From positions 15,562,001 through 15,626,000 of the forward strand of contig OZ365111.1 in assembly GCA_977030845.1 (NCBI GenBank): a stretch of 64,000 bases of DNA, written 5' to 3'. This document shows, piece after piece, positions 2,352 to 48,758 of the stretch. This stretch comes from Fimbriosthenelais zetlandica (lineage: Eukaryota). The position numbers and the translations under genes are program-made. Position 1 is the stretch's first letter. Every line of letters starts with the position of its first letter. The notes beneath the pieces were generated by a model, which was not told the origin of the DNA, did not search any database, and worked only from the letters and a program-made list of their open reading frames with translations.

Positions 2352-4539
2352 TTAAAAATTGGGATCACTGATGTCAGAAAGTTTTTGTCCGAACAGGTCT
2401 TCTTCGAATTGTGAGAGCTGGGTAATAAACCCACGGTTTGGTCTCGCTGATGTACAACACTTCAAAAGATGTGCATAAGCCTCCTGAAAATATGATAAAA
2501 TTAAAACCAATGACATAAGAGTCGACATAATAGTCTATTTTATAAATGCATACAAGTACATTGTATTTTTATTAAATAAGGATATCAGTTTGGCTCCACA
2601 GTAGATTTAGGTAGATGTTTTACAAGGCCAAAAATTTCATGTTGCCATGCAGAGAGGTCCCTTTCTCTATACTACTCGTACAAATACTATCGAATGAGAA
2701 ACACCTAAAATTAGTCTTGCAAAAGATCTATTAAAATATATCCTTTACACCACATCTTGTTGAGTCAAGTTTGATACTCACTTTTAACGGCCATTTGTGA
2801 TGGTGCATTAGATAGGCGAGGACTACAGCAGAACACCGACTGATGCCCAGCTCGGAGAATACTAATACACATTGGTTCTTGGCTTTTTGCTTATCAATGA
2901 ACTGACAGGCTGAGGCAAGTTTGGAATGCAGGTCTGATTCCGCATTATCTTCAACTGAAACTTGTACGAGAGATTCTCCCTCTTCAAAGCTGTGAAATGA
3001 AGAAAATAGATAGCATTAGAGATCAAGTTCATATAATAAATAATGATTTATAAAATTGCTGCCATTTGAGATCGGATTATTGAAACATCAAATGAAGCGT
3101 ACTGTACACTTACAATGACTCTTTCTCTGTACAGCAGTTGACATGGGCCTGTATTTTCAGATCCTTCTGGATATAGGCGGCATTGCCTTGTCTCCAATTG
3201 CCCAAATATAGGAAGCCTGGTAGTATTTCTGTAGGATAAGTCTTTATGTCATCCAGTTCCTAAAAAAGGATTATATATGGTAATAAATGTTACTATACAT
3301 TTGAAATTATTTTACACCTTTAAAATAATTTCTACCAGATTCAATCGATTAAAATTAAAAGACAATTTCATGATTTTCCAATTAAAACCAAATCAAATAA
3401 GAGATATGGCAGATAATTATTATATGAAACGATGGATGGATTGTTAACTCACTCTAGGCATGTAAATGATCTTTTGTGTCCTTAGGAATGGGTAAAGTGC
3501 TGAGAAATCCTCATAACCGCCTCGTAGGATTCTGACAGTTTGACGACTTCCCATTTCCCACATTATCTTACCGCATGATAATGCAGCTCCTTTTGACAAA
3601 AGAAATATAAATTATGATGATAAGTAAATAATCAGGTCCAATCTGTTCACACAAAACTTTCAAAGCAGTTTCTGCAGATTTCTTAAGACTTAGCGTACGG
3701 TAACAATTTTCTACCAATTCTACTAAAAATATATTGAAAAAAAAGAATCTACTGACCTTCCTCCTTTAAAGTCCGTGTGTTCCCATCATAGATAATTACG
3801 TGGGATTTACATTCCAGCTCAGCATCATAGGGAATAATGAATTCTCCATTTTCATTCTACAAATGTAATAAAATAATATTTTCCCATTTCGATCAGAAAA
3901 GTCAGTACCGGTAGCACAATGAAATTTGATCATCAACGCATAAAAAAATTATTCTTTGTTACTGTTAGGTCTATATTCAAGCTCAATTTAACTGGATGTA
4001 GGCCTAAATAATTTAAATGATGCAGTGCAAGCTAGGAGAACTTACCACGGGCGCCCTCTTGGCTGTAATTACATGGCTTTCTTCATAATCTTCTTTACAC
4101 CTTGCATCTAAATAAAACAAACAAATATTCGTAAGTTCGCCAAAGCCAAAAGACAGTACCGTACGGTACCGACTACCGGTAGATCTAGCACGGTACCGGT
4201 ATCGGTAACATTATAAAGTAGGCCTACAGTATAGTATTACCATCAAAATTCAAGCTTGATTTTTGCTCAAAGGCACTACCAATAAATTCACTGTACTAGT
4301 CTATCTATAGAACTAATAAATGTACTGGACTATAGTCTAGCGGTATATCATATATAGTTAGGCCAAGGACCAGGTGGTCCACTGGATCACATTCAAGTCA
4401 TCGAGCAGCTGTCAAAAATAAAATTAGTGTTTTTACCCAGTAGAAGTAAATAATTAGAATCACTCAGCACTGGGTGCTTCAATCCTTGGTTGAGCAAGTT
4501 ATACAAGTCAGTCGGCCCAATTAATTCTAAACCATCCAT
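2352..4539 (-). CDS. STYXL1: STYXL1 / MK-STYX pseudophosphatase (rhodanese-like CH2 domain plus inactive DUSP domain), 295 aa
   Basis: Exons 4539-4437, 4107-4046, 3856-3757, 3589-3453, 3259-3114, 2989-2782, 2483-2352; total 888 nt. Motifs PTDLYNLLNQ, DARCKEDYEESHVITAKR, ILRGGYEDFSALYPFLRTQKIIYMP, VFSELGISR (FS replaces catalytic HC), RPNRGFITQL. Missed by the ORF track. Confidence 0.93.
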
Positions 4540-5276
4540 GGTTTTGACAAGTAATTATCTGATGCCTTCTGTCCCAACACGAGCAATAGTGATCCGCCAT
4601 GTGCACCACCAAAACATTGGACCTAAGAACAGTCGGAATAAAGCGCAGTGAGTCCCTCATGTAAAAAGAGTCCCGTGATAATATAGAGAATGTACAATGA
4701 AAATTAACAGTAGAGGGAGACTTTGGGCGAAATAAAAATATGAACACTGTTTTTTACTAGTAAAACATATAGTGTGTATTAAAACTAAGACCAAAATCAG
4801 AAGCGCAATGATATTAGCTTTCGGCTCCGTTGCTAATCACGCGGTCTATTGTAGTCCGCTTTAAAGCTTCACTACTGCCACGGACGGCAAAAGTCAGAAC
4901 TAAACGGAAATGCAATGTAAGGAAGATTCTGATTGGTCCATTACTTCTTGGCAGCCATTTTGTAATCCGCTGTGGGAGCCGCCATATTTAGTTTCTGCTT
5001 CCAGCAGATGGCGACTCTGTTTAATATTCTACACCACTTAGGCCCTTATACTGGAGATTAAAGCTAGAAACAAGAAATATAAAAGTTATCTCATTCATTT
5101 TATAAATAAAATGATGATTACTTCGCCTGATGAAGGGAATATGTGGGATTTAGGGAGCCTATATTTCCATGGTACACATTTCTTCTGACACAGCCGCCGC
5201 CATTTTGACCTCGACCGGCTGTCCAGCAGAAACTTCACCAGCTTATTTGTCAAAGTCCTGCAGATCAAGTGTCATC
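4540..5276. promoter_or_regulatory. Bidirectional promoter / 5' UTRs of STYXL1 and MDH2
   Basis: 737 bp between divergent ATGs. Reverse CCAAT at 4932-4936; YY1-like GCCAT(T/A)TT motifs at 4953, 4979 and 5197. Confidence 0.7.
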
Positions 5277-7513
5277 ATGTTTTCCAGTCTTCTCCGCCCC
5301 AGAACTCTGCAATCTGCAACTGGATTACTGAGGAACTTGTCTACAACTGCACGGGTAAGTATTTGGCGGCATCAAGCTTCCAAAGTGTGTCTAAGATCGA
5401 CGAAGTGGGGCGTTCAGTAAATGCCCTCCAACAGTAACACCACTCTCACCGGGCACTACTGTAGATGACTAGTACTAAAAGTTCAACTCGGTCTCAGAAT
5501 TAGTATTTTTATTAGTACTGTCTGAAGCTGTCAGATATGTCATTAACTTTTTATTGTGTATGCCATGACTAATATTTATTACATTGCTTATGCATTTCTT
5601 GAATTATAATATTTAAACTTTAATTATTAAAAATACATAATCTTGCTAAGACTAAGTCTTATTACTATTAGAAGGTCAGTATATCTCCAAGGCGCTTGTT
5701 CGGCTGGGGTTGGCGCTCGGCAAACTGTCCTAGCCAAAGTTACAGTTTGGCTAGGCCTAGGACTAGGTTTGAACTGAAAAAAGGGGCGGGGCGGGTTCTC
5801 GTCTATTAGTTACCATGACGATGTAACTTTTTAATTCTAAAAATAATTTCCTTTGCAGAATGGCACCAAGGTGGCTGTGTTGGGAGCCAGTGGTGGCATT
5901 GGCCAGCCAATGGCCCTACTCCTCAAGACCAACCCAAACATCACACACCTGTCCCTCTACGATATTGTACACACGCCAGGAGTAGCTGCTGACATCTCCC
6001 ACTGCTCCACGCCTGCTAAAGTCAGCGCCCATCAAGGACCTGAGGAGCTAGGTAATGCCCTCACAGGTTGTGAAGTGGTGGTCATACCAGCTGGGGTACC
6101 AAGAAAGCCAGGCATGACCAGAGATGATCTCTTCAACACCAATGCTTCCATTGTCCGCGACCTCGCAGAAGCATGCGCTGTCAACTGCCCTAAAGCAATG
6201 ATCTGTATTATTGCAAACCCGGTACGCAAGGCTACTAAAGATGCCCTGATTCTTAACTCCTATAGATTAGGTCATAGATAGATGTACAATTCAATGAACT
6301 TTAGTCCTTGAAAAATTATTTTAAACAATAAAAAATGTTCAAGTTTCTCTAAGATCCCAGATTTAATTATAGGGAATGCTTTAATTCACTTTGTATATTG
6401 TCATGTTAAAACCTATTTAATGTTACTTATAACCATTAAATGTCTAATTTGCTTTACATTCTAGGTGAACTCCACAGTACCAATCGCAAGTGAAGTCTTC
6501 AAAAAGCATAATGTATATGATCCAAACAGGATATTTGGTGTAACTACCTTGGATATTGTCAGAGCCAACACATTCATTGCCGAGGCTAAGGCAAGTATAA
6601 ACTGATGTGCTCCAAAAATGTGATTTCACAAATTTCCATCATTTTAGAAAACTGTCTTATTTGTGTGCATATTTTGGCAGGGTCTGGACGTAAGCCGCGT
6701 GAATTGCCCGGTAGTTGGAGGCCACGCTGGAGTGACTATTATTCCACTCATCTCTCAGTGCACACCTCCAGTCTCCTTCCCTGAGGCTGAACGTGAAAAA
6801 CTCACTGTCCGTATCCAAGAAGCTGGAACAGAGGTTGTCAAGGCAAAAGCAGGAGCTGTAAGTCTTTATAGGGTTCTTTCTTCCACATATTTAAAATAGT
6901 AATGAAAGAAGGCAACTTTAAAACAAATTTAAATAATTGATTTCTAGATTATTGACAAATAGTCCTAAAGCTTTGGTGCAGTCATCTCAACTACGAATGT
7001 ATGTTAAGTTATATAATATAGTTTATTTAACCATTTTAATACCATAAAGCAGAAGGTTTAAATTATTATTGTTACACAATTTTTTTTCTTAGGGCTCTGC
7101 CACTTTGTCTATGGCCTACGCTGGTGCCAAGTTTGCGAGTTCGGTTGTCCAAGCATTGAACGGAGAGCAGGGAGTGGTCGAGTGTGCCTTCGTTAAATCA
7201 GATGAGACAGAAGCCAAGTATTTCTCCACCCCCATTCTTCTCAGCGTAAGTAATAATACAAGTTGCATTACTCAAAAATCAAACGAAACTAGAAATTCTC
7301 ATATCTGCAGTTTTCTTTTTATAATAAATCGAATAATCTAAAATATTTCATTAAAAAATTATATTTTATTTTTTTCTTATGCAGAGGAACGGTATGGAGA
7401 AGAATTTGGGGCTCGGCAAACTGATGGAACACGAGGTTAAACTAGTTGAGTCCGCCATGCCCGAGCTTCAGGCCAGCATCAAAAAGGGAGAAGATTTCGT
7501 GCTAAGGAACTAA
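5277..7513 (+). CDS. MDH2: Mitochondrial malate dehydrogenase, 341 aa
   Basis: Exons 5277-5354 (targeting peptide [26 protein letters not shown]), 5859-6221, 6465-6590, 6681-6857, 7093-7245, 7385-7513; total 1026 nt. Motifs [46 protein letters not shown]. Intron 3 is GC-AG. Confidence 0.97.
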
Positions 7514-8206
7514 AACCTTCACATCCTAAAAACAATTGGTGAAAAAAAACAGCTGTCTGAGTAGGACAGGAAGATATAAAGAGTTCAAAAACTAGTTCTA
7601 AGGATGGAATCGATCCGTGCAAGGCAATGATAATGACAAAGGCATTTTTGCCTTCAGGAAAATAAGGACACTGCTTTGGTCATTTCAATCCATAGATCAT
7701 TTCAAGCTTAACGGGTCTTTTTTCGTGACTTTCTACCAGCGAAGCACAATAATTAGGAAATCTCAATGGAAAAAACCTAGAAAATGTTATAAATAAGTAG
7801 GCAGGGGAGCAAGCTTGAATAATATAGGTGGACTGCAGAACTAACAGTAGTTGATAGGATATAATGTTAAAATAAGTTATAATCAATTACACGCGGTTCT
7901 GGTTTTTCTCCTGGTGGTTTTTTCTTGGTCGGCCTTCATTATGTTGTTGTTGAGTGCGCTGTACATAAAAGCTGCTTTCGTGAGTGTGAAAAGAGAACAA
8001 AAGACAAATTCTGTGTTTCGTACAATCTTGTGTAGAAAGAGTTTGACGACCATCGTTATAAGAGCGGCCGTGGTGCATCTTAGTGGGCTACGATTAACAC
8101 TCATGTCCTACTCCGTTTTGAATAAATCTAATGAAACGTGAACTCTATTGACTTTTGATTGATAGTGCTAGATTTGGATGAAGCAGAATATTGATTGAAT
8201 ATCGAT

Positions 8207-11045: not shown

Positions 11046-11061
11046 GGGGGGGGGGGGGGGG
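11046..11061 (+). repeat. Poly-G tract (about 16 G)
   Basis: Direct reading; downstream of the ANKRD13 stop codon. Confidence 0.85.
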
Positions 11062-12029: not shown

Positions 12030-15000
12030 TTATTTCTCGGTTAAGGAGAGTTCTAATATCCGCTGTAAATCGTCATCTTCTTGTCGACGTCGCTGAGCGT
12101 CTGCCTCCATCTCTTTTTTAGAGAGTTCCATTACCAGGCGTAGTTGTTCCTCCTCGTCCGTCTCCCCGACCTGAGAGTTCCCGGTACAGCCGGTTATAAC
12201 GCCAGGTCCACTTGTTAACTTCATGCTCTCCTCTAGTGCCCTGAAAATATTTTTTAAATATTTTATTATCAAGTTTATTATCAAGTTAAAAAGATATTTT
12301 GAACAGGGAGATATTCACCATTTAGAAAGAAACCATGTCGCCTTAAAAATAAAATAAGTTTTTCGTTCTATTTCACTAGCATATTGAGTAACCTGAAAAA
12401 AGCCATACCATAGTTAAAACAAAATAAAAATCTTCTCCTGTCCATTGCATTAGCATAACATATTTGACTACCGGTAATTCCAGCACTGGTCAACGAGCTT
12501 TCAGTAATCTCCACGTGAAAAACGTAATTCTAAATTAAAATATTTAATATATTTTCTAAAATAAAATAATGTATATATTGACTAACCTCTGTAGGAGCCG
12601 TTCCTCCTCAGCTTGGATGGAGGCTGGAGACCTAGCACCTGGCGGCCCCGCCTTGTTCAAAGCTTCCCAGAATGTAACCTAAAAATAGAGACAACAAGCT
12701 CAATGTTGTTTGTTCAAATAATTAATGATGGAATGTTGGAGATATTGGGCGAGGGCTTTTCAGGAAGAGCAAGAATCTCTATTGGAACACGATGGCCTGC
12801 TCTTCTTGAACGGCAGCAATTGTTCCTTTAAAATGTGTCTAAGTATGACAGTGGAAGACGTGGCTGGCCATTGATCCATGTGAGCAGCACAGAGTGGAGA
12901 AGGACAATGGGTTGAGATATTGGGAGATACCAGTTATGTAATTGATCCTACCTGGTCGTTTTCAGTTCCTGGCTCCAGTAGACTCTGCTGTATGGCAAAC
13001 TGGAGAAGTTCATCATCTTCGTCTCTCATCCTGCCCGCATCATGACGACCTGCGTCACCTAAAACAACCACACACATTTCACTTATCATAATTGTTTAAA
13101 TTAATTCAATTAATTTAGACCGATATTTAACTGCTGAAATCCAGTCGAAGTGTACATGTATACAAATTTAACCTAAAATATGGGTTTAGTGTAGTGTAAT
13201 TATTACAGGGTAGCTTGCCTAGCAGAGCCCGAGAAACCCGAGATTCTCTACAGTCCTGTATGGGATAGTCCTTATGTGTAGCAGAGTCTGGGTCTCTCGG
13301 GCTAGCCTAGAAGTACACCTAAACTTGCAACAGGCAAGCTGTTGACCGTTCTTTAGATTTTTGATTTTTTTAAAGAAAATAAAAAATACTTCTTGGCTTA
13401 CTAACCTACAACAGAGTAAGATTCCGGCGCCTCGAAACAGGCCTCATCTACAGCACAACAGGTCGGCACTTCCTCCGCCTCATTCCTGATAGGATGTACT
13501 CCCGGAGCCTCGCTGTCAGCCGCAAATATGTTACCAAAGGTGATACGAGCATTTAACACGTGGAATAGTGGGATCTCTGAAAATCAGATAATAAGTGTCA
13601 GGAATTAGTTTTGACATAACTTTTGTCTGTCTTTAAAGTCGCAGAAACTGTTGAAAATGTTGATCATTTAGTTTAGTTAAGACTTTAGAAATGACTTTAT
13701 CTGAAAAAGCGCAGTGAACGCAGATTTTTAGTCAATAAAAGACTTTAAAAAGAAACAGAGATACGTTGAAGCAAGGAGGAAACATGCTGTCGGCGCAAAA
13801 GATTGTTTTATCGATAAGCAGTATTAGATCTTTCACATACAGTACTTTGTGTTAATATATAATTTAACTCACCTATCTTGACAGGGAAGCCAGCCGGTAG
13901 TTGAAGGGTAATGAAGTCTTTAAGTTTCTTGAAGTGAGCATTACTTGCTGCCATTAAATCAATAATTGGCACCACCTGTAATACAATATTTCACTTTAAC
14001 AAAATAATAGCTCCTATGGAATGATAAATTACTATTAAATATATATAGATTTCCTAGCAATAACATAAAGACATGATGTATAGAGACATAAAGAGTAAGA
14101 CTAACCTGTTCTGGCAAGGACAGTGGGTAATTTTCACTAAGCCAAAGATTAGCTTTGAACTTCTGAGTTTTAGTAGTTTGTTCGATTGGGCGTCCGATAT
14201 CCCGCCCTGCTAGGTCTATCATACTATTAAAGTACTCTTCAGGAGTGATGGATGTTGGGTTGTTGGCAAGCGTCGTCACCTCCTAAAAAATTAAAATAAT
14301 TTTTAGATACAGTTCAATCACATTCAATTCATCAGCCGAACAAGAAGTGTATTGCTGACCCCATTGGCAGTAGCGCCCTGTTCAGAGGTGGGTGAAGTCA
14401 CCGACTTCTCGGTTTGTTCGGCGATCCCCAGGAAGGATTCCAGCGGTGTCCTCACCACTTTCTTTGTCTTCTCCTTGTCTTGTTCTGTCAGATGTTCGGT
14501 GCGTGTCTTGGTGACTAGTTCCACATTAGTAGCACTGAACACCTGAAAAAAAAATCATTTTCTACATTACTTTCAATTTCACTTAGCAATATGAAAGTTA
14601 ATATCATTTTAATATCGTAATTTATATAATTAAAAACAGATAATTAAGGGAAGATCTTACCTTACAGTCAAATCCGTTGACTGGCTCTGATTTGTCGCTT
14701 TTCCAGCCCCATATTCCTGATTTATTCCTGAAAGAAATATGGTAACATTAATTTATAGGTTTATTTTAATAGAATATCTAATAATTATTGTTCTTCACAA
14801 ATATGTATGTCAGAAATGGCAAGAATTAAAAATATAGTTACTCTTTGCTAATGAGACTTAATTACAAAGAAAAAACTAGATATTTCTCCAATATCTCAAG
14901 GAATAAACATGCAATTCAAATAAGAAAGAATTCCTTTGTTAAACTCAAGGATCAAAAACTGAATTTGGGGCGTGGGGTGGGGTAGTGTCCAAGAAGGGGT

Positions 15001-18000
15001 TAACTCGAAAACTGACAGGCAACTGTAGGGGGAAATTTATCATAACAATTAATATTATATATTGTGAAATTTAAAATGTAAAATAGACAGTATGAGATCG
15101 CCTTATGATGAACTACGTACGATATAAATATATCTGAAACTCTTGATTTCTATTAAATTCAATAAAAATATGCTAAACTTGGTAGAAATTACTCGAACCA
15201 ACATATCTCCAATTTAATTGACCCAGACCAGATGACTTTGAAAAGAAAGCAAATTACATTTTATAACCAATCAATAATCAACTTACTGTCTTGTGCAACT
15301 AAACACTGGGACCCTAGCCCTACCACTCTTATTCTTATGTATCAAAGTGAACAATTCCCCATTGAAGCCCCAATTAATTGGAGACGGCAATACATTTGAA
15401 ACCAGGCACAATGCAGGCACTCAGTAAATTCCATAATAACATCACCAAATGCCACACATACAGTATGAACGAATCGATCCCAAGTGAAAAAGTAAACATC
15501 ATTTAGATGCAGGCAAAGCTTGCTTGTGATCCATGGTCAATTAGCAGTGCCAATAATAAAAACGTCAAAATAAACATTAAACTTTAGTGGACTCGACTTG
15601 TGAATATGGGAAGGCCAATTTGCATGCATTGCTAAATGAGTGAAAAATCCTCACTTGCTCCTTTCAAGCACATAAAGGAGGAAAATAGGTGAGACAAGTT
15701 TAAGCTTCTCTCTACTAGTTTTAATAGTTAAGAGTGAATATTTTTATATTCAAATATTTAAATTAGAAATTAAGAATGAAGTGAAATGTGGGGTGGGAAT
15801 GTGACGAGTTAAAATGTGGCTGGTGAGATACGCATATCTATTTTTATACTATTAAAGTGAAAGAATTTCCTATATAAATCCCCAAACATTTTAGATACCA
15901 AGCGGTTTCATATCCAGCTCTTACTAACTTAGGTGTTAAGACTGTCTTAACAAGTAAATAAGAATCAATCATATAGATAAACACTTTGCATGGTATATTC
16001 CTCATGTCAAAATGGTAGAATAGTTCAAGCTTGATCTAAATAAAAAAGATCTAAGATTGAATACACATCGAATCAAATACTTATATTTCAAAAGGTTAAC
16101 AGTTGTGGATTTTAGAATAGATGTCTTAAATAGTTAATAGTTTTAATAGTTAAGAGTGAATATTTTTATATTCAAATATTTAAATTAGAAATTAAGAATG
16201 AAGTGAAATGTGGGGTGGGAATGTGACGAGTTAAAATGTGGCTGGTGAGATACGCATATCTATTTTTATACTATTAAAGTGAAAGAATTTCCTATATAAA
16301 TCCCCAAACATTTTAGATACCAAGCGGTTTCATATCCAGCTCTTACTAACTTAGGTGTTAAGACTGTCTTAACAAGTAAATAAGAATCAATCATATAGAT
16401 AAACACTTTGCATGGTATATTCCTCATGTCAAAATGGTAGAATAGTTCAAGCTTGATCTAAATAAAAAAGATCTAAGATTGAATACACATCGAATCAAAT
16501 ACTTATATTTCAAAAGGTTAACAGTTGTGGATTTTAGAATAGATGTCTTACCTCTCAAAGGATATTTTCTCTGTATCGATGAATGTAGTGACAATGGGGG
16601 CAGTGAGACGGGCAGCAACCTGATCATCCGATGGTACCAGTAAATCTATGTCAGGAGACTCGGGCAGTACTTGCATTGTTTCTGTATAAATCTGGTGGAG
16701 GTCGTGGTCTACCTCCATTACCAGGGCGTGGTCAGCTAAATCAGAAAACAAAATACCATTACCATTTTAATGATTTATGAACATTTTAAAAACGAAATAG
16801 TTGAAAAAGCTATACAATTAAACAAGACATGGACAATGTGTGATTGTACTGTGTTATAACCAGCATTTTTTGTCAAAAGGCATATATCAAAGTTCCACAA
16901 CGTTTAACCGATTAAAATTAGAATATTGCGTTGTCAAAAGGGACATTTTTGTTTAAAATTCAATTTACCAGTTCCTTTGAAAATGTAGCTCCTGCTTCCA
17001 CGTTGCCAATTCATGTTGTCAAATCCTAATAAAGTTGTGTCTATGCGTACATTTGGACCTGGAAAAAGTAGTAAAATTACCTTGTTAAAAGTTTAAAATA
17101 TTTTACACCGTAGGTAATGACATTGAAAATGACATGTTGATTTCATATTTCAGGTATAATTTGGATGGCTACTTACCACTTTTCCAAACTTTGTACACAT
17201 CACTTGGACACATTCTGGAAACTAATGGTACTGTAAGGAAAAAAAGATTTGCTTAAGAATTGACATTGAGGGTAGACAAATATTGTAATTATCACTGTGA
17301 CTGAATTGCACTATTGCTCTAACCAAGTAGCATACTAACTGCAGACAATTATAAAAAAACATCAATCCTGGAAAACCCATACAATTTTGGTTGACATAAT
17401 CTTACCCCAGCTCGTAAACTCCCATTTCATCTCTACATAGAAATCTGGTGCATCACGGAGCTTCTGTAGGAGTTCAGGCACGCCTTCGGTGCGTCGCTGA
17501 TAGCGCTGGAAGTCCCTATACTGGAGTGCTAGTTGGACCAGCTCAGGGTCTCCAGTACTCACAGCTTCCTGGGTAACTACAAGATATAAAACAACAAATA
17601 ATACAGGAATCAGGCAAGGCTTAATCATGAAGATATTGCCACTACCTCTGACCCGATTTTCCTTCTAATTTTAGATGTTAAAATACCCTCCTGAAGTGAC
17701 CACCTCCTATAGTATAATTACATGTACAAAAGGTGTTCGCATTAGAGGATGAGCAGTGTACATGTGTATATATATTTGTATTCAAGTCTTCTTTTGAAAT
17801 ATATCTAGCACTTTATTGTGCTCCCAACCCAACAATTTTGAACCACTAACTACTTCCTGCGGTTCACATACGAAATTAAAAATGATAAATTTATTTTAAA
17901 ACAGTGGGATTTTTAACTTTTGAAAATAGAAGATATCCCTGTACTGACCACTCCAGTATTTGGCGTTTTCACCATTGGCATTTGCTCCGTGTTTGAAGAG

Positions 18001-19530
18001 AACTCTCGCACATTCTAAGTGACCGAGGGTCACGGCGAGATGGACCGGGGTACGTCCACGAGGATCCTTCCTCTCCAAATCGTGCTGGTGTTAGAAAAAA
18101 ATGTAAAAGTAAAAACAGAACTGACTTTCACAATAGTGTATTGTGTATTATCCAGGTCAAAAGCATAGGCAGACATAATCCATATATATTATATACCGGT
18201 ATTTATTCCGAAAAGTACACATTAAAGTTTTGGTACATATGAGAGCATAATATACCGTATATTATGGAATAGAGCTAGATTAATGCATACATGAACATAT
18301 GAACTATTTGATCATAATGACATCGGACCTATACCGTATAGCTATGGTAAAATCCTTCTCTGGATTATTAAAATGGGTCGGTTTCAATGGATTATTGGAA
18401 TAGGGACTTATCAATGGTATGTTAAGATTCAAAATGTAGTATATATATGACTGTCAAAATCACTGTGCCACATATAGGATGTGCCCATTAAGTTATTGAT
18501 TAATGATTCATTTCAGATTACTACAGTTATTTTATTGAGCCTTGTCAACTATTGCCAAATATGCACACTGAAGAGGAGGATCAGAATACACATTGGGAAA
18601 GTTTTGCTGATTAGCAAATATTATCTACCAGGAACATCCATAGACAGTACCTATCGCTCTGATGCAAAAAAAACCCGCTTATCATCGATCTAAATAGTGG
18701 GCGTGGTCAAAAGCCTGTTCGACTATTTTTGACATGGTTCCAAAAGCTTGAATGAATGGACAGTGCACCATGCGGCTTAACATCTCGTCGGTTTAGCAAG
18801 ATATACATGTTCTGGCCTTCCTTAAACACATCATCATCTGACTAAACAGTGCCAAATGGCCATGAGTCATATATACTGTGATGTGAGGTAACGTCAAATA
18901 ACCTTGTGCAAGGCTACTCTACCTGGATATATCCATCGATGTTAAAAAAAAATAGGCTAATTCACACATAAATTGGATATTTACAGATTACAATTTAAGC
19001 CATGAGGACGAAGTAAATTAAAAGTACAAAGCTAATAGCTATATTAGGTAAATGAAGATAAAAGTTAATTACAAAGAGAAGTGTATTCTAATGTCTAGTC
19101 TAGGTAAACCAATTATAATATACCCGTACTTATATTATAGCCTAGGCAAATGGAATGGCCGGTATCACCAGGAAGAAAATTATTGCAATGTTGTGCAAAT
19201 AGAATACAGAGCTAATGTCTTTCTTCATGAAAAGAACCAACCACATCTTATGTGCGTTCAGAACAGATACCACGGCTCTAACCCTAAAAGTGGGCCAGAA
19301 AAAGGCAAATTCATCATCTCAGATGTTACGTACCACAATCTTCTAACTAATGCCTCCCCAAGGGGAAAGAGCCTGGGATGGAGGCGGGGACAAGATACCA
19401 CGGCTTCTTGTGGAATTTTCAACCCATAACTCACCTCCCCTGCTTCCAACAACTGATTGAGTTCTTCATTCTGGTTATGCCAAACTAGCCAATGCACTGG
19501 AAATGTTTCACGTATATTTTTGGCCGACAT
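12030..19530 (-). CDS. ANKRD13: Ankyrin repeat domain-containing protein 13 (ANK + GPCR-chaperone domain + C-terminal UIMs), 613 aa
   Basis: 14 exons: 19530-19435, 18084-17949, 17576-17406, 17230-17177, 17058-16969, 16735-16552, 14727-14661, 14542-14360, 14282-14106, 13975-13873, 13576-13406, 13058-12952, 12678-12587, 12240-12030; total 1842 nt. Motifs [72 protein letters not shown]-like [11 protein letters not shown] and [14 protein letters not shown]. Confidence 0.95.
15716..16550. repeat. Tandem duplication: two apparently identical 413-bp copies (15716-16128, 16138-16550) with a 9-nt spacer
   Basis: Both copies read identically by eye, offset 422; located in ANKRD13 intron 6. Confidence 0.93.
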
Positions 19531-20292
19531 CGAAGCGTGAAAATAAAATGACGATGCACAAGATAAGTCCGGCTGCGATGAAAACAATATGCTGACAGCG
19601 ACAAGTGACAGCAGACAAGAGGCTCTGATGGAAGGAGAACCAATCAGAAAGGAGGACTCAAATAGGTTCTGGGATTGACCGGAAGTTGATAGTTGATCGC
19701 TAATCAGATCCTTTCTTTCATATTGCTTTGGCTGGCCCATCCGGATGTTGAAGGTCTCCAGCCAATCAGATGACTTCTTTTAGGCAACTTCGGTAGAGTG
19801 GGCCATGTTTTTGTTTGACTGATCGAGTGTCGCTTAAAATGGACACTTGGGACTTAACACTCAAAATAAACACTTTCCAAACAAGTCTATATGCAAAAGG
19901 ATAAAGCAGCCGTGGCCCCATGTCTGTCACATCAGCTTGTTTCAAATAAATGTGTCAGGGATTTTCGGTTAGTTTCTGTACAGTCCGGTGGTGGCGTAGT
20001 CGTACAGTGTCTCTATTAGTTTCGCATTCCATCCCCCTAAAAACAAGGAAATCAGTTATCTATTGTTGTATTTTATAATTTTGAATAGCACATGCATTTT
20101 CTCGTATGAAATAAATTTACTCTGAAAATGGAAGTAGATTTCTAAAAAAACATAGAATTCATACGAAAATGTTATAGGCGCCAACTCTGCACCCACCATA
20201 TTTACTTCTTCCAGCAAGGAAGAGATTTTGTTCTTGGGTCTATGACTTTGGCTTCAATTTTTTGGATATTCGCATGACCCTAGGCGATCCCG
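19531..20292. promoter_or_regulatory. Bidirectional promoter of ANKRD13 and GIT
   Basis: 762 bp between divergent ATGs. CCAAT boxes at 19640 and 19762; ETS/GABP-type CCGGAAGT at 19679-19686. Confidence 0.7.
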
Positions 20293-35975
<15,683 letters not shown>

Positions 35976-38458: not shown

Positions 38459-38561
38459 TGCATTATCACAGCTTGGGGGAAATCTCTGACATTGAAGTTC
38501 ATTATAGGAGTGCATTATCACTGCTTGGAGAAAATCTTCGATATTGAACTTCATTATAGGA
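38459..38561. repeat. Two diverged 52-nt tandem copies
   Basis: TGCATTATCAC(A/T)GCTTGG...TTCATTATAGGA occurs twice, downstream of the GIT stop. Confidence 0.75.
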
Positions 38562-39067: not shown

Positions 39068-39182
39068 CAGTGGCGGATACAGCATTTTATAAAGCCTTGT
39101 CACCCCTCAAAATCATTTAAACATCAAAAAACCATCTCTGAAATGGGGTTTTGACCCCCTGGACATCCCCACTGGAGCCCTG
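39068..39182. mobile_element. Degenerate MITE related to the 53602 element
   Basis: Left end CAGTGGCGGATACAG; decayed right end CTGGAGCCCTG; similar size (about 115 bp). Confidence 0.4.
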
Positions 39183-40779
39183 AGTTTATTATATAGAACT
39201 ATACATAGTTCTATGATATATCTGACCCTTTAACCCTAATATCATTGAGTTGATGGGTTAATTTCGTTGAGGTTTTTTTATGAGTATATTTGTAGTTAAT
39301 TTTTGTATTAATTTGCCTTTTTGAATCTCATGCAACTTAATGTTGTCACATTCAATCTGTGTTTTGTCAGAACAAGAATTATTCATCTTTAGTTAGAGTC
39401 CTAGCAAATATTCAGATAGCACCGCTTCTATGAGAATATGACATAGGTTTTTGTTGGTTTAAATCTTCCATTCTCATTTGATAATGCTCTTCGACTTTAT
39501 CTGCATCTAGCACTAGAATATACATTTTTCTTATCTTTATTGTGCAATACGTGGGATGTTCTTTTTCGCTGCAATTCTTGTGGTTGGAACCTTCAAAGTA
39601 AATGGATTTTCTGAAACCTCTTTTTAAACATGGATTTAAAACATTGATATATATCATAATGGGCTGTTTTTGTAAAAAATAATATTTGAATTCTTCAGAC
39701 TATATTGCTTTTATGCGAGATTCTGAGTTTTGAAAGGCATTTTGTCCGATTCAAGATCATTCCTTTACGGAGTTGTCTATATGAAAGAGAAATTATTGCT
39801 TAAAATATTTAAAAAGATATAATAAAGTATTTAAGTACTTAAGCATTTGACCATCCAGGGATGTGTTAAAAGCTAGCTATTAAAATTATAGTGTTAATCA
39901 AACGAGAGTTGGGGAGCCAATCTTTACTAAAGTATCAATGTATAAATGAATGGCATATAAATGCCCCATCTATTGTATGTGACCCTATGTCTATGATAGT
40001 GCCCTGGTTAGGGTTAAATCTATGTATGAACTCGATTCATGAGTCATAAAATGAATATACTGCTGGGTTATAATGATTAAGATTTCTACTCTTAAAAATG
40101 TTAGATACTTGTATCAGAAACATGGTCTGGGCACATGGTTAGAACGTGGAATGTTGTATTTGTAGATTGCCATATTGGCCAAGATACAAAAATACGATAT
40201 AATATTTGGCTATGGTAGACCAGTGTTGTTACCATACCGGAAAATCCGTGTAACCCAATTGTAAGTACTTGTATAGTAGTTCTAGCACTTTTTGTACATC
40301 CAAATATATAGGTAATAAATATTTAACTTCAATAATCGTTTTTTTACCTTTCTTACGACAAATTTCTGTTTAGGAAATATGTTTTACGAAATCAGTTTGT
40401 ATTAATAATTGTTGTAAATTTATTTCACTCAAGAACAAATTCAATTCAACAGATTCATTCGGTATTGGAAAGCCAGCTCCTTCATTTAGACCGACCCTAC
40501 TCTGCCCTTTCTCCCAATTGTAAAACAAAATATACAATGAAAACATTACTACTTTCGTAGTGCGACTCTTGCAATTCTTCCCTGCATGAGAAGTGTCAAT
40601 ATTGTAATGAACCCCTTTGAAAGTGTCCATTCGTTCAGTATCTATTCAATCTCATTGAGACATGTCCATTCATCTCTCAAACCTTTATCGTTACCTGCAC
40701 TCTCATATGAACCTGAACCTTCTGGGGTTGTATACTAATTTTTCACCTCAGAGGTTCTCTGTCCTCTTGCGCCATTTTT

Positions 40780-41190
40780 ATCTTCGTTCCTCTCACTCCA
40801 CCTCTATCTACTTATCCTCTTGCTCCGTTTTTACCTCAATGTCCTCTTGCTCGATTTTTTTCTTGTCTTCTCGCTCCACTTTTATTTCCTTGTCCTCTTG
40901 CTGCAAATTTATTTATTTCTCCACTTTTGTCTCCTTCTCCTCTTTGACCACTCCTTTCTCCTTCTCTTGGCCCGCTTCTTTCTCCTCCTCTTGGCCCACT
41001 TCTTTCTCCTCCTCTTGGCCCACTTCTTTCTCCTCCTCTTGGTCCACTTCTTTCTCCTTCTCAAGGCCCACTCCTTTCTCCTTCTCTAGGTCCACTCCTT
41101 TCTCCTTCTCAAGGCCCACTCCTTTCTCCTTCTCTAGGTCCACTTCTTTCTCCTTCTCCTCTTGGTCCACTTCTTTCTCCTTCTCCCCTT
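40780..41190 (-). repeat. Purine-rich 24-nt minisatellite at the TRMT2A 3' end (E/K-rich in one frame)
   Basis: Units such as GAG AAG GAG AAA GAA GTG GAC CAA and GAG GAG GAG AAA GAA GTG GGC CAA; decays with stops below 40913. Confidence 0.85.
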
Positions 41191-44100
41191 GTCTCCTTGT
41201 CCTCTCGATCTAATAGCATGATGAGTTCACAATGTTGAGCGTGAGGGAACATATCCACAGCCACACAGCGAGTCAAGAGGAAGGGCTTTCCTTTGATTCT
41301 ATTCGACTCGGTCCGTGTGAAGCTTAAAATAAGAGATTTTTAAAAAATTAATGATATTAAGAAATAGTTATAACAAAGTCAGTGTATAGCCTTAAACCTG
41401 AATTGGTCACGTCAGACTAAAAAAGAAATGTCAAGTTAAAGCGAACATAACTGATATCATTGTACATTTATCCTAGCCTATATAAAGGACTATCCTACTT
41501 ACTCCACTATGTTTTGGAGTGCACCATTTGGATTACAGGACACATAGACAACGCGTTTGATGGCCAAACACTTCCTTATTGCTTTAACAACATCCGGATC
41601 TGGAATACATAAAATAGGTTTTAACCGACGAAGAATTGTCGCGGGAAATATAGCATAGAAATATCCATTAAACTGTTTTATTAAACAGATAAAGGACTTA
41701 CGTAATCCTCCCCTTGGTGGATCTACCACTGCTACAGCTGGGGCTCCATACAGCCCACGGACAAAACCAGGCATGAATTGTTCAGCCTTAGAACAGACAA
41801 ACTCTGTGTTGGTGAGACCTGCAGAAGAGGAATTGATGGTTAAAAATGGATAAATTTTTTTGGATTATTTTGGGGGTTTCTTTCGCATAGATATATGAAG
41901 AAAGAAGGTTGTACAGTTTACACATACCGTTTAGTGTTGCGTTATATTTTGCATCTTCCACGGCCTCCGCACAAAGTTCTACACCGACGACTCTTTGAAC
42001 TCTCTGTTAAATATGCAATTTACAACATCAGTATAATAACGTATAATTTTTGTTTACTACAGTAAGAATCCTAAATATGCTTCTGGTATGAATAATTGGC
42101 CTAATGTTTGCATTAGATCTGATTTTAAATAGTTGTCTAACGTTAAATGAATTCTACTTTACCTTGGCCATTGTAATACCGATAGTTCCTGTACCACAGC
42201 ACACATCTAATAGCACGGTCTTATCAGAGACGCAGCACCAGTCAGCAACGGTAGAATACAGCACCTCAGCTGCCTTTGTATTAACTACAATAAATCGAAA
42301 TAAAATGTATCCCTTTGTGAAGAAAATGACAATTCTAAACGGGAGATTCAAATGGTGTCCACATTAAATTGGTGCAGGATCAATCTTTGAAGGCATTGGG
42401 ATGTCTTACTTTGGAAAAAAGCACTAGGCGATATTCTAAACTTCAGATCCAATAAGTCCTCTTCGATATACTAAAATAGAAATATACACATTAAGTAATC
42501 TTCATAAATCAAGGCACACCGAAATAATTTCCAGGTTAATTTTCTAAATTTCCAAGAAGACGAACCTGATCGCCAAAGAGATGTTCGTCCTTAGTTGGAT
42601 CCGCAATCCTGATGAGGGAAATTAATAGCAAGATATGAGTCACAATCTGTTAAAAAATATTTAAAAGTTCGAAATGCACATAAATTAAAGGTGATGAGAT
42701 ATTAAATTAATATTAAAATACCTATCAGTACGGACTGTAAAGTACATGGAAGTGATTCCACACTTGGATCCATCTCCTGTTTCAAAATAAGCTTTTACTT
42801 TCTCCCTTTCAGCGTTTACCTCCACCTAAACCAAACAAATCAAAAATATAAATGAATGGAGAGAGTAAATTGTGTCAGAAATTGCTACTTCACTGTTCCA
42901 TCTAAAGTTTCTCGAGTTTTCAAGAATATAAGTGTATGTCATGTATGTGTATACCAAAATGATAGGCAACACCTATAATAATCCATGGGCTTTAGTTTAT
43001 ACGATGCATTCAAAGCTAGATAAGGAAGGGATGGAAGGGTGATAGCATACCTCAGTCAATTTGTGAGGATGAAAGACTAGTAGAAGCATTATGTCACCCC
43101 TACAGTTTGTTCTTACAGACGCCTGGCGCCAATTACCAGATTTGTCTTCTGGCACGTAGCCTGGATAGATGGAATGCTCCTGGATATATGTCTGTACAAC
43201 CTAATAGAGACAGGTTATGGTAAAATTAAAACGATTATCAACGACGATTAGAAAATCCATATCATTTAGAAAAATTATATAATGAAAATTAGGAATGCTA
43301 CTATAGAAAATATAGGTCTAGTCGCTAATTGGAAAGATCTGACATGCACATTATAAATGCGGCTATTATTATTTTCGTAAATGTACGTGAATATATCTCA
43401 AAATCACTAGCTTTATTTCTTCCACAAGTAACATCGGGGTAGGATAACCCACCTTAGTTAGTTTTTTCATGGCATCTGGCACATGGACGCACTCGTCTAC
43501 TTCCAGAACACTAGTGATACCCTTACTATACCGGCCAAAACGGAAGCCAACCGTCTTCTCTGAAATGCAAAATGAATGGGGATTAACTCAAAACGTGATA
43601 TGAAATTTGGATAAATTTAATTTTGATATTGTTATATGAAACCCACCTTTTCCATCTGGAGAGGAACCGATTGTGAATTCACATTTATTTCTGTAGTTAT
43701 TTTGCTCAGGCTGTAAGATAAATGTTTGGCATTTAATATGAAGAAATATTATACAAGAAAATTGGGTCTAAATGGGGTTTTACTTAGTACATTATGATAC
43801 CCATAGACATTATAATATACTGTATATAAAATAGATTTAAAAGATACTCACCGAAGGTTTAATTGGATCCATTGGGCAACACATTCCCTGGTTCTGACGC
43901 CTTTGAAATTAAATAATAAAATTGTCATGAAATAAGCTATTGTCGCTTAGTTTAGAAAACCCAAAAATATATTTTAAAACATTACGTATATGCACTGTAT
44001 TTATGAAAAGAACTAAACTGGGTCCGAAGTATTATGGATATACAAGGAACACTTACTTCTGGTTGATTATGTGTTGTTTCAAGGTGTTATTGTTCTTCTC

Positions 44101-45685
44101 TATTTCCCGACCAAGTTTTTTAATGTAGGCTCGTATTTCTATTTCTTTAGACTGAAAGATTAAAATGATATCTACAGAGACCAGACAAAAGGAAGCATTA
44201 TAATTGAATAATTACCTGTATAGTAAACATGATTTCAATTGTAGCCTTCTTCATGAAAGGGAATCTTGGTCATTCTAATGGGCAGTGTGGGTGTAGGGGA
44301 AGAACTCATACCCTAAAATTTTACAATAATTTCAATCTCTACTTCTAAATAAATATAATTTACCTCAAGTTGATTGGAATACGGCTGTTTATAGAGAGGC
44401 GTGACAGCCAGGTTCAATCTGGATGAAGAAAAAAGTGATCAATTAGATTCTTTGAACCCCTAAAAATAATTTTGTGCAAAATAGCAGTAATATTTATGAG
44501 AGAATATGAGTTGGCTTAAAATACCTCTCGGCGGGAGGGATGTTTGGATCTTCTTCTTTAGCCGCTTTATTCTTGTGCTGGTTTCCATCTTCTGTTAAAT
44601 AATAAAATCCTGGTTATATTTTTATTTTTAAAAACCCACTGAAAGATTATGTCATATTGTGAGTTGTAGATCTACTGCTATCTGTCCAAACCACGAGATT
44701 ATTGACCTTTCAGAACAAGAAAGAAAAGTAGGACAACTGACCGGCTTCATATTTCCTCTTGCGAAATAGCGGATCAGCAGCGGGCAGGGCTTTCTGTAAA
44801 ATACAGAGGATCAAACTGATTTTAGTAAAGACAACCAATAGTTCTACGTAGGTAATTTTTACAAAAATTACAATTCTGTGATGAATGGTATAGATATGGG
44901 AGGTAAATGTGATGCTACTATAATGTACCTTAGCCTTCCATGTTTTGCCTTTCCACACGTGTCCATTGCATTTCTCAAGGGCCGCATCACGATCCTCATC
45001 ACACCTGAAATAAAACAGATGAATTAAAAGTGCAAAATTTGGAAAGGTAGATATGTGTATTAGATGCTCCTGTTTAAATTAATAAAAAATTAAGTGAGAC
45101 TTTTTTATGTTTACCTGAACGTCACAAAAGCACATCCTTTCTGGCCAACCATTTTCACCTTTACGGGTTTGAGCTCCAACGACAGTATTCGCTTCTTTAA
45201 TTGCTAAATAAGAAAAGGTATACATGCTGAGCATAGACAAATATTTTACATCTTACAATGATATTAAACATCTGATAAGACTTATAAGTCGAACTAAGAT
45301 ACCATTTTTTAGCTGATTTTAATTAGGAACTGCGGTACAATATCACACTTACCCCGAATCCAACGAAATTAGGCAAGTTAAATATTTCAATTTTGAAAAT
45401 CTCTGATGTAAATTGCCCATCTTTTGTATAAGCGTACATATCAATATCTGGATCACGATTGGATGCTGCTGCATTAGGGGCATCTTCAGGGCTTTTGCTT
45501 TCCTCTAGTTCCATTTTTGTCTCACTCTGGTCTTCTGATTTGACGGAGGGGTTGGGGTCCGAAAGCACCTTGGCAGATGAATCTTCACCATGGGTTGTTT
45601 TCTCCACTGCCATTGGTGTGTCCTGATCCGTGATTTCAGTCTCCATTTTGGGTTGCTCAGGCTCGGTGGCAGTGGTATCTGACAT
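41109..45685 (-). CDS. TRMT2A: tRNA (uracil-5)-methyltransferase homolog A, 656 aa as written
   Basis: 19 exons: 45685-45353, 45203-45115, 45004-44929, 44793-44742, 44591-44525, 44418-44364, 44151-44057, 43900-43852, 43710-43647, 43559-43453, 43200-43051, 42825-42722, 42608-42566, 42470-42410, 42284-42163, 42003-41928, 41818-41702, 41599-41503, 41322-41109; total 1971 nt. RRM (FTSEIFKIEIFNLP), YRNKCEF, FRISPSAFFQ, LLDVCCGTGTIG, DPPR, YVSCNP (catalytic Cys), DMFPHAQHCEL. Confidence 0.95.
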
Positions 45686-46212
45686 GATGATATCAATGGG
45701 TCAATGAAAAAAGATCGACCCTTTACCAAAATATCAACAGACAACACAAGTTGGAAGCATTAAACTTTAGTTTTATACAGATTTCAAATAATATGGAGTT
45801 AATCAATAGGTGTACAATTACACCTACGTAGGTCATGCATTGCCACAGCTTTACAGTTTCACATATAAGTTTATAAGTTCTTAACTGCGAAGAAATTTAG
45901 TATTTACCGTAACTTTTTACTGCTCGCACGCCGCAATGATGGAGGCAGACATATTGAATTACCGCCAGTCGGTTATAAATCACGACATAAATCTTATGAA
46001 ATATTTCTTTATTTTAAGGAATCTTAGAGTGAGAAACATAATTTAAGATAAATATAAAAGCAGTAATGTTACTGTTTAAGTGTTTTTTGGCCTTTTAATG
46101 TATTTTGTATCCATATGCCGTAAGTGAGTTCTGTGACCCAACGTCTTGGTATTTCAGCGGGAAACGTACGCCTTTCGCCACAATTAGAAATCTGTAATCA
46201 TCTGTTCACACA
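45686..46212. promoter_or_regulatory. Bidirectional promoter of TRMT2A and RANBP1 with E2F-type sites
   Basis: 527 bp between divergent ATGs. GCGGGAAA (reverse complement TTTCCCGC) at 46157-46164; TTTCGCCA at 46173-46180. Confidence 0.7.
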
Positions 46213-48758
46213 ATGGCCGATGAAAAGGTATTTCTTTACAAATCTTCAGAGTATTATCGTAAATGAAATTTTGGAATGGTTTATAGATGTACCATTGCAT
46301 CTTTGACATCGAACTGCGTTTGTTTTTCTTTGTTCATTCATTCACCCTATCTTCGCCCATCCCGTCTTTCAAAACAAATTTGACAGATAGGAATGCTTGC
46401 TCGCCAGCAACACTCTTTGATAAAGGAAATGAAATCTGGGATCAGTACTAAATGTAATCATCTGTTTGGGCTGAATCTCGTGGCTGTCAGGCTTTATATC
46501 TCAATATTTAGCCTAATTTTGCAATGGTTACTTGAGTCTTGACCTGTGTTTTAGGCCTTGGCCAGCCTTTTCTTGCCACTGACACTCGTATTGCCGGAAT
46601 TCAAGCACTTTCTCCCTCAGACAGCTGTGAGTTTAAAAAAATGATGAAATGAAATAATCATTGTCCATCGATCTTTTTTGCGGGGTGATAACTCTACTAG
46701 TATGATTTTTTTCATTAGGCTTATGCCCTAGTAATATCGCCCTATGCCATGGTAGTCAATATGCTATGGCCTAGCCCTAGGCCTATGCAGTGCCAATGGG
46801 TAGCCCTTGTCATAGATAAATCTGATAATGATCTATGGCATAGTCTTCAATTAATTCAATAATTCTACCAATTGAGAGGTCAGAGGTGTGTCATATAATT
46901 GAATATAATCCTACCTGAGTTACTGAGTAAGAACATTATAGAACTGATAGGAGCTGGAAGATATTCGAGGTAAAATTGTAATTTATAAATAACTATAGGC
47001 CTAAATGTGTATTGTATATAATTTGATTGACTTCTGTGTAAGCCCTACATGTATGTTATCAAAAATGTCTAGATATCGGTGCATGTACTTGAATAACTTG
47101 ATTTAACTTCGCAGCCTAAGATTAATGTTGATTATATGTTTAAAGGGTTTTATACTAAATTATTTTAATCATTTCCCCGAAGGAGGAAGTAGTAGAAAGT
47201 CCGGACGTCTATTTTGCGCCGTTAGTGGATCTTCCCATCGTAAAAGTTGACTCGTTAGAAGAGGATGAAGAGTGTCTGATCAAATTGTGAGTAGAAATAT
47301 ATTTTACCCAAGTAATGTAAAAGTCAAGATTTTAAAAATTCCTTCCCCCATGAGTTGATTAAATAAGGTTTAATATTTAATTAATTTATTATAACATTGT
47401 ATTTATGGTTTCTTTTTGTTTCAGGCGTGCCCGCTTATACCGGTATGACAGCACAGCAGATCCTCCAGAGTGGAAAGAGAGGGGGACAGGAGACGTGAAA
47501 ATTCTCAAACACAAGGAAAGAAAAACATGTCGCCTTCTCATGAGGAGAGAAAAAACATTAAAAATCTGTGGAAATCATTACAGTAAGTTCCTTAAAATTG
47601 GGCTTAATTATCCTATCGAGCCTTGTAAATCTATTTCCTCGATTTTATTAGAACTGAAATTAATTATTAATAATGAAAAGATTGCTGAGATATATGCCAT
47701 TTCGTTTACAAAATTTGTATGGATTTTAGGAATTATTCCAACAGTTGTACAGTTAAATATTTTGATAAAAATGTGATTTCCCTATGAGAAATTATATTTT
47801 TTGTAAATCATTCTATCATATTTTCTGTTTTCATATCTCTGAGATATCTTTCCGTTTATAAAATATTTCAGTATTGCCTACAATGGTGCTGAAGCCTAAC
47901 TGTGGTAGTGACAAAGCTTGGGTTTGGAGTACACCGGCAGATTTTGCTGATGAGGAGGCCCGACCTGAATTGTTAGCCATCCGCTTTGGTAACGCAGAAA
48001 GTAAGTGATAATTAAGTTGGATGTTGAAAGAAATAGACTCTTTCTGCTAATTAAAACTCAAAATCCCAGTTCGAAGGTTTATGTGAGCAGAAAAATTAGG
48101 AACATTTTGTTCTGGAAAATTTATTTTTATCCTTATTGCGAATTATACAACATTCGCAACTGACTTATGGATCAGAAAAAATCCTTTGCTGCCAATGTGT
48201 GTTCATTTTTGTTTTTCAGATGCAACGAAATTTTTTGACAAGTTTGAAGAAGCAAAGAAACAAATGGAAGAATACATGAAAGACAAAACTAATAAGAAAG
48301 GTATTTACAGAATTTACATTTTAATATCAGTTATAATATATGATTATAATATGGGTCTATTCAGGTATTTCAATATATAATATTTAATTTTTGTCCGTCA
48401 GTAATTGTAAGTTATTTTAGAATACCTTCTAAAATTGTGGCATTTTAGGAGGTAGGTTTTTCTATGAGTGAACTTTTTTTATTGATTTTAAAATGTAATA
48501 AATTTGTTTAATACTTGCCCATTTATTTGAGAAAAAAAAAATGAATGTAACCTTTTGTTTGGGAATTGGATATATACATTTTGTTTTAATTCTGGACTGT
48601 GTTTCCTTTTTTCAGACGAGAAATCAGAGAAAGAAGAGAAGGAAGAAAAGGCAGACGGTACTGAAGATGTAGCTGAAAAACTTGGCTCCATGTCCGTCAA
48701 AGAAAAGAAGGAAGAGGAGCAAACTACAGACAGCAGTGAGAAGGAGGCGGAGAGGTAA
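46213..48758 (+). CDS. RANBP1: Ran-specific GTPase-activating protein RanBP1, 209 aa
   Basis: Exons 46213-46227 (MADEK), 47183-47286, 47425-47582, 47872-48000, 48220-48300, 48616-48758; total 630 nt. Motifs [47 protein letters not shown], acidic tail. The first-exon assignment is less certain than the rest. Confidence 0.93.
46555..46626 (+). other. Candidate in-frame cassette exon in RANBP1 intron 1 (72 nt)
   Basis: CTGTGTTTTAG acceptor, GCT|GTGAGT donor, phase 0-0, open frame [24 protein letters not shown]. Confidence 0.4.

Follow-up and report, generated by a model that had tools for sequence, protein, structure and literature searches.

Three consecutive head-to-head gene pairs of Fimbriosthenelais zetlandica that are also divergent in human

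The deep conservation of neighbouring genes arranged 5′ to 5′ is already established (PMC3514665, PMC1487180, PMC2871058), and according to the first of these surveys (Irimia et al. 2012) such pairs make up more than their share of conserved pairs and are co-expressed. Table S4 of Davila-Lopez et al. (2010; PMC2871058) includes GIT2-ANKRD13, RANBP1-TRMT2A and MDH2-STYXL1 on its 'Divergent' sheet. There, GIT2 paired with the ANKRD13 cluster and RANBP1 paired with the uracil-5 methyltransferase cluster were recorded in eight vertebrates each, and MDH2-STYXL1 in Ciona, chicken, human and mouse. Table S5 of the same study, listing potential bidirectional promoters in human, gives 256 nt for TRM2A-RANG and 72 nt for STYL1-MDHM. 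The shared promoter of TRMT2A/RANBP1 (the Htf9 locus) and its control by E2F are described in two reviews (PMC6554986, PMC9857238); a full-text search found no paper that names GIT2-ANKRD13A or STYXL1-MDH2 as bidirectional. Here we describe a stretch of 64 kb (the window; positions 15,562,001-15,626,000 of chromosome C11) from the 447-Mb genome of the animal Fimbriosthenelais zetlandica, on which counterparts of all three pairs follow one another. Positions given without a chromosome refer to the window.

The window is AT-rich (37% GC) and CpG-depleted (observed/expected ratio, o/e, 0.56), and intron-containing genes are visible in its six-frame reading. Six intact genes make up three divergent pairs in the order STYXL1(-)/MDH2(+), ANKRD13(-)/GIT(+) and TRMT2A(-)/RANBP1(+). 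The start codons were placed by peptide search, each ATG being backed by homology of the first coding exon, and lie at 4539 (-) and 5277 (+) for the STYXL1-like gene and MDH2, at 19530 (-) and 20293 (+) for ANKRD13 and GIT, and at 45685 (-) and 46213 (+) for TRMT2A and RANBP1. The spacers 1 to 3 enclosed by them (4540-5276, 19531-20292 and 45686-46212), which we presume to be shared promoter regions, measure 737, 762 and 527 bp from ATG to ATG, respectively, values that bound the distance between the start sites of transcription only where no distant 5′ non-coding exon exists. Stop codons are located at 2352 (STYXL1), 7513 (MDH2), 12030 (ANKRD13), 35975 (GIT), approximately 41109 (TRMT2A) and 48758 (RANBP1), and consecutive pairs are joined tail to tail with stop-to-stop gaps of 4.5 kb and 5.1 kb. 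The partners of each pair are adjacent and diverge from opposite strands with nothing between them; the scan of the window for open reading frames (ORFs) disclosed no family-bearing ORF in the spacers or between the pairs, and the tRNA and Rfam scans gave zero matches anywhere in the window. A first-pass annotation of this DNA had already reported the three ATG distances, all of which were reproduced exactly by the peptide search, and a span of 2352-48758, which is exact as well because the STYXL1 stop codon lies at 2352 and that of RANBP1 at 48758. For all six genes, the Pfam domains matched on single exons and their strands are those anticipated. Alternating strands are unremarkable by themselves; what stands out is the orthology of each of the three pairs to a divergent pair in human. 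The human arrangements given in the annotation are documented for all three pairs in PMC2871058, and the wombat agrees with them, since its locus contains a gene with Ank and ANKRD13_C domains (-) upstream of and divergent from GIT1 (+).

The STYXL1 (MK-STYX) orthologue (2352-4539, minus strand) comprises a rhodanese-like part and an inactive dual-specificity phosphatase domain, the combination typical of this family. Pfam matched DSPc on exon 2734-3015, and for two separate exons STYXL1 was the best or sole match among PDB sequences (1.4e-10 and 1.1e-10). At the pseudo-active site, Ser replaces the catalytic Cys in the loop VLVFS-x-LGISR, which was aligned to chains 9fqr_Xs and 9d2f_H. Exon 3447-3611, to which Pfam assigned no family, matches STYXL1 only among PDB sequences and is read as the probable end of the rhodanese-like part. 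Its neighbour MDH2, the orthologue of mitochondrial malate dehydrogenase (5277-7513, plus strand), has six coding exons with Ldh_1_N and Ldh_1_C matches. The top PDB matches are human mitochondrial MDH2 (4wle, 2dfd; 6e-55), ranking above plastid, glyoxysomal and bacterial malate dehydrogenases, and the Arg-rich first exon is predicted to provide a presequence-like N-terminus.

On the second pair, the ANKRD13 orthologue (12030-19530, minus strand) disclosed Ank, ANKRD13_C, UIM and UIM_2 Pfam matches on its exons. UIMs are present in human ANKRD13 A, B and D and absent from ANKRD13C; with Ank repeats, the ANKRD13 C-terminal domain and UIMs, the window gene is of the A/B/D type. Its exon series matches Patella ANKRD13. 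Genome-wide, ANKRD13_C is encoded at only one further locus, a multi-exon gene on the minus strand of chromosome C10 (C10:45,630,001-45,639,000), presumably of the ANKRD13C type; a '745-residue open frame' returned for it by the genome search was discarded, the gene being multi-exon and not one ORF. An ANKRD13 intron of the window gene harbors a two-copy tandem duplication (15716-16550) with a 422-bp unit and 100% identity, which is either a recent event or an assembly duplication. The GIT gene (20293-35975, plus strand), the pro-orthologue of GIT1 and GIT2, was mapped by tblastn with full-length GIT proteins and consists of approximately 16 coding exons, intron 1 spanning about 4.7 kb. Along the gene, Pfam matches to ArfGap, Ank, GIT_SHD, GIT_CC and GIT1_C appear in the domain order of GIT1/GIT2, the second Spa2-homology repeat not being scored separately by Pfam; the genome encodes the GIT1_C domain only once. 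For both ANKRD13 and GIT the first exon has a match in Patella, and for GIT it has one in Owenia as well. Identity of the GIT product to its counterparts is about 62% throughout, whether these come from nemerteans, molluscs, an annelid, a brachiopod or a hemichordate. A maximum-likelihood tree placed it in a lophotrochozoan clade (support 93/99), where it belonged neither to the molluscs nor to the nemerteans. In this tree, GIT1 and GIT2 of vertebrates group as sisters (100/100) to the exclusion of the window gene, which is therefore the undivided counterpart of both.

The third pair begins with a TRMT2A-type tRNA (uracil-5) methyltransferase gene (41109-45685, minus strand) carrying a tRNA_U5-meth_tr Pfam match. 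Twelve exon-level matches, exon 1 among them, connect it with the Capitella gene that lies head-to-head with RANBP1, and five with the Patella gene behind GIT. Its N-terminal exon matched PDB chain 7pv5_A (depositor's name FI05218p) weakly (1e-3), and on single exons no Pfam match to the N-terminal RRM was obtained. The catalytic domain is clear, but TRMT2A, suggested mainly by the position beside RANBP1 and by the Capitella and Patella exon matches, is the weakest of the six assignments. A genome-wide search with PF05958 was blind to short exons and missed even the window's own gene, and therefore says nothing on a TRMT2B paralogue. At its 3′-end the TRMT2A frame continues into about ten tandem copies of a 24-bp unit (40940-41185; also 40760-40914), and the product thereby ends in a repetitive Gly/Glu/Arg/Ser/Pro tail; the matches to Capitella and Patella do not reach the repeat. 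The RANBP1 orthologue (46213-48758, plus strand) has six coding exons and a Ran_BP1 match. The first exon contains five codons followed by a GT donor and, joined to exon 2, yields the N-termini of Lingula, Sinanodonta, Capitella and amphioxus RANBP1. For the open frame around the exon with the Ran-binding domain, all named best matches are full-length proteins termed 'ran-specific GTPase-activating protein'. The coding span of about 215 codons aligns from the N-terminus with named RANBP1 proteins and encodes a single Ran_BP1 domain, in keeping with the small size and single domain of this family. The sole other locus of this domain in the genome is a four-domain RANBP2-like gene on C21; RANBP1 is thus single-copy. 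The mini-exon (46213-46227) with its intron opens the gene here and in Capitella, Potamilus and a spider, and the position of this intron is therefore very old.

Some of the pairs are retained in other invertebrates. In the annelid Capitella teleta, a gene for a uracil-5 methyltransferase of 549 residues (-) and RANBP1 (+) lie about 3.2 kb apart. In the gastropod Patella vulgata, the ATGs of ANKRD13(-)/GIT(+) are separated by 753 bp vs 762 bp here, and a gene for a uracil-5 methyltransferase of 663 residues follows tail-to-tail behind GIT, as it does in the window. With vertebrates including the wombat, Ciona, Capitella, Patella and the window genome, the pairs have the distribution of conserved ancestral microsyntenic pairs. 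Since the window genome, an annelid, a mollusc, Ciona and vertebrates share pairs, a single origin before the split of protostomes and deuterostomes followed by later losses is by far the simplest reading. Thus, the comparison of gene order shows that each pair owes its head-to-head arrangement to the last ancestor that protostomes and deuterostomes had in common, which makes the pairing of these ordinary housekeeping genes more than half a billion years old. That the pairs predate this split, as proposed in the first-pass annotation, is supported by the lophotrochozoan placement of GIT and by one pair each in Capitella and Patella.

In composition, the spacers fit unmethylated promoters of a genome whose gene bodies are methylated. 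Their CpG o/e amounts to 0.75, 0.75 and 1.05 in spacers 1, 2 and 3, respectively (window mean 0.57, standard deviation 0.19), the value of spacer 3 being among the highest in the window. The spacer of ANKRD13/GIT in Patella gave 0.77 vs 0.51 for its locus. Bidirectional promoters in human are reported to be rich in YY1-, CCAAT- and ETS-type motifs. The YY1-like sequence GCCGCCATnTT has four matches in the window, three of which reside within spacer 1 (at 4951, 4978 and 5196), which also contains one inverted CCAAT box; two CCAAT boxes are present in spacer 2. The ETS/GABP-type sequence CCGGAAGT occurs three times in the window, each time on the promoter side of a gene, at 19679 in spacer 2 and twice upstream of a small rhodanese-like gene. 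Spacer 3 harbors one E2F consensus 56 bp before the RANBP1 ATG. Since the four matches of the window (2.6 expected) are not significant alone and no such consensus was found within 600 bp of the RANBP1 ATG in Capitella, Potamilus and Trichonephila, this site was dropped as promoter evidence. From these features we infer that the spacers are compact shared promoters whose disruption is probably costly. Each of them, shorter than 0.8 kb and CpG-enriched over a methylated genome background, would accommodate two core promoters with shared activator sites (YY1-, NF-Y- and ETS-type) interleaved between them, so that nearly any breakpoint between the partners would cripple one promoter. A short spacer would furthermore be a small target for breakage, which may aid the retention of the pair.

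Chromosome C11 (55.7 Mb, 12.5% of the assembly) contains more relatives of the human regions in question. TMEM120, UFD1, CDC45, BCL7, aldolase, ATXN2 and NOS were used as family markers, whose human members we take to reside at 7q11.23, 12q24, 16p11.2, 17q11.2 or 22q11.21. All seven are found on C11 (NOS with two of its three copies), a clear enrichment; as incidental controls with counterparts outside these human regions, the RANBP2-like gene and the second ANKRD13 gene lie elsewhere (C21 and C10). The three NOS loci of the genome are C11:33.15-33.24 Mb, C11:54.30 Mb and C19:14.75 Mb. Moreover, all nine of the chromosome-level mollusc assemblies listed have GIT and RANBP1 on one chromosome, as judged by identical lengths of the sequences on which they lie, but none of the five vertebrates does. 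The markers on C11 and the linkage of GIT and RANBP1 in molluscs therefore argue that the three pairs belong to one ancestral chromosome. We consider it likely, taking the evidence as a whole, that three ancestral divergent pairs have been kept by means of compact interleaved promoters and lie on a chromosome equivalent to the ancestral linkage group from which human 7q11.23, 12q24, 16p11, 17q11 and 22q11 derive.

Several observations weigh against this explanation. The GIT pairing has been lost in an ant and a tardigrade, and no partner exon was detected within 10 kb in Pinctada, Potamilus and the spider; the constraint is hence not absolute. For STYXL1-MDH2, the case comprises the window and chordates only. 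A blastn comparison of spacer 2 with its Patella counterpart returned chance-level words and no alignable sequence. The seven markers, whose human positions are presumed ones, occupy only about five places (33-54 Mb on C11), which limits their independence.

How the three pairs came to succeed one another within 47 kb may be judged separately. Evenly balanced in our view is the reading that the succession is an accident at the level of the lineage, in which pairs from a shared ancestral chromosome were shuffled together and the six-gene array never existed in the bilaterian ancestor. Markers of the same regions are 18-39 Mb away on C11 and gene order is well mixed; Capitella has a WD40 gene, not GIT, behind TRMT2A; in Solemya and Bradybaena, hundreds of genes separate GIT from RANBP1 to judge by the locus tags; and in Pinctada, the 10 kb to the left and to the right of GIT are devoid of a partner. 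A rough estimate, assuming about 300 conserved 5′-5′ pairs, predicts about 0.3 chance runs of three per genome. Patella, however, exhibits ANKRD13(-)/GIT(+)/TRMT2A(-) in the same order and orientation. Such an arrangement is very unlikely to have arisen twice, and therefore at least the ANKRD13-GIT-TRMT2A part was inherited; as Patella has the same stretch, it is older than this species. The ancestral block suggested in the first-pass annotation is upheld only in part, by this order and by the location of all partners on one conserved chromosome; Capitella, Pinctada and several molluscs are without the block, and STYXL1-MDH2 was seen beside the other pairs in the window only. That the entire array is what remains of one bilaterian block of tail-to-tail bidirectional pairs, which preceded the two genome duplications of vertebrates and whose pairs were afterwards, through reciprocal loss, distributed intact over different sister chromosomes (7q11.23; 12q24 and 17q11.2; 22q11.21), seems unlikely to us. 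If it were true, the unit of selection would be the pair, not the block.

Rather unlikely is also a merely passive retention of ancestral pairs by short spacers and the slow rearrangement of lophotrochozoan and vertebrate genomes, for which no shared promoter or co-regulation would be needed. In its favour, the conservation of gene order is known to depend on the distance between genes (PMC2871058), pairs were lost in fast-evolving ecdysozoans, the window and Patella spacers lack sequence conservation, and the partners of each pair share no obvious function. Yet, the ATG distance of ANKRD13/GIT is nearly equal in two phyla, the mammalian TRMT2A/RANBP1 promoter is experimentally bidirectional (PMC9857238), and both an excess of 5′-5′ pairs among conserved ones and their co-expression are on record (PMC3514665). 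Finally, a spurious likeness to the human pairs, caused by paralogues or independent origin, is hardly credible and already largely refuted: in spite of the second ANKRD13 locus on C10 and an exon-level family search that could not separate TRMT2A from TRMT2B, the best named matches are the expected orthologues for five genes, the window ANKRD13 possesses UIMs like the A/B/D type, the TRMT2-type gene adjoins RANBP1 as in Capitella and vertebrates, three independent coincidences among about 20,000 genes are negligible, and orthology, which the first-pass annotation had named as one point on which its proposal could fail, holds by domains, PDB matches and the GIT tree, least firmly for TRMT2A.

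The ancestral pairs with their candidate promoters leave current views intact. Deep conservation of 5′-5′ pairs and the occurrence of these three in vertebrates were established before; what is added is their occurrence in lophotrochozoans, a Patella spacer of almost equal length and a block shared in part, none of which is surprising. Three divergent pairs whose genes can all be named have persisted from the ancestor of protostomes and deuterostomes onwards, and CDC45/UFD1, elsewhere on C11, is a fourth; in ANKRD13/GIT, the length of the spacer hardly differs between two phyla. Pairs of this kind are test beds for selection on bidirectional promoters, as the spacers are of a size suited to reporter constructs and the ecdysozoan losses provide natural controls. 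In addition, the window illustrates gene by gene how neighbours on an ancestral chromosome reached different human chromosomes of one paralogy group.

Further genes were noted around the array. A small rhodanese-like gene follows RANBP1 tail to tail (50329-51582, minus strand); its upstream region has the highest CpG density in the window and contains the CCGGAAGT sites at 51663 and 51902. The gene for an SLC13-type sodium-coupled carboxylate/sulfate transporter (53739-60950, minus strand), which the first reading had recognized, has Na_sulph_symp matches on five exons. To the left of the window (C11:15,543,000-15,548,300, minus strand) lies a gene with RhoGEF and RhoGAP domains, whose PH and C2 parts were read in ORFs; the C2 exon gave no Pfam match. 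RhoGEF, RhoGAP, PH and C2 constitute the architecture of BCR/ABR, and human BCR is located at 22q11.23 and ABR at 17p13.3. The right flank (C11:15,626,001-15,656,000) contains a PLC-gamma gene (PI-PLC-X, two SH2, PI-PLC-Y; plus strand), beyond which minus-strand exons were read as DPM1. PDB matches gave no confirmation of the BCR/ABR and DPM1 readings. Human PLCG1, SLC13A3 and DPM1 are found on 20q12-13. The SLC13 gene of the window may therefore correspond to 20q no less than to 17q11.2, and two ancestral linkage groups may be joined in C11. About 33 kb past the right end of the window, an intronless frame of 518 codons on the minus strand encodes a Core-2/I-branching glycosyltransferase domain.

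Compared with the mammalian Htf9 locus, in which TRMT2A is Htf9-c and RANBP1 is Htf9-a, the third pair consists of orthologous genes that are likewise divergent and separated by less than one kilobase (256 nt in human according to PMC2871058, 527 bp from ATG to ATG here), with one E2F consensus just upstream of RANBP1 as described for mouse (PMC9857238), a likeness which for the window is one of sequence only. It differs in composition, the mammalian spacer being a GC-rich CpG island whereas the window spacer has 34% GC and a CpG o/e near 1, and in that the E2F match is missing from Capitella, Potamilus and the spider. Like the conserved ancestral microsyntenic pairs of PMC3514665, the three pairs are non-paralogous neighbours kept across metazoan phyla, mostly 5′-5′ and with short spacers; they are, however, not named in the main text of that study, the supplementary lists of which may include them. 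PMC2871058 gives all three human pairs as divergent and conserved, but records them in vertebrates only, plus Ciona in the case of STYXL1-MDH2, to which the window genome, Capitella and Patella are now added. A last parallel is UFD1-CDC45 of human 22q11, for which Table S5 of PMC2871058 cites 721 nt and a characterised bidirectional control region (Igaki et al. 2001, as quoted there). The genes CDC45(-)/UFD1(+) are head-to-head here too, with 741 bp between the ATGs (C11:49,078,738-49,079,480); while situated 33 Mb from the window and outside the array, they represent a fourth conserved divergent pair on the same chromosome.

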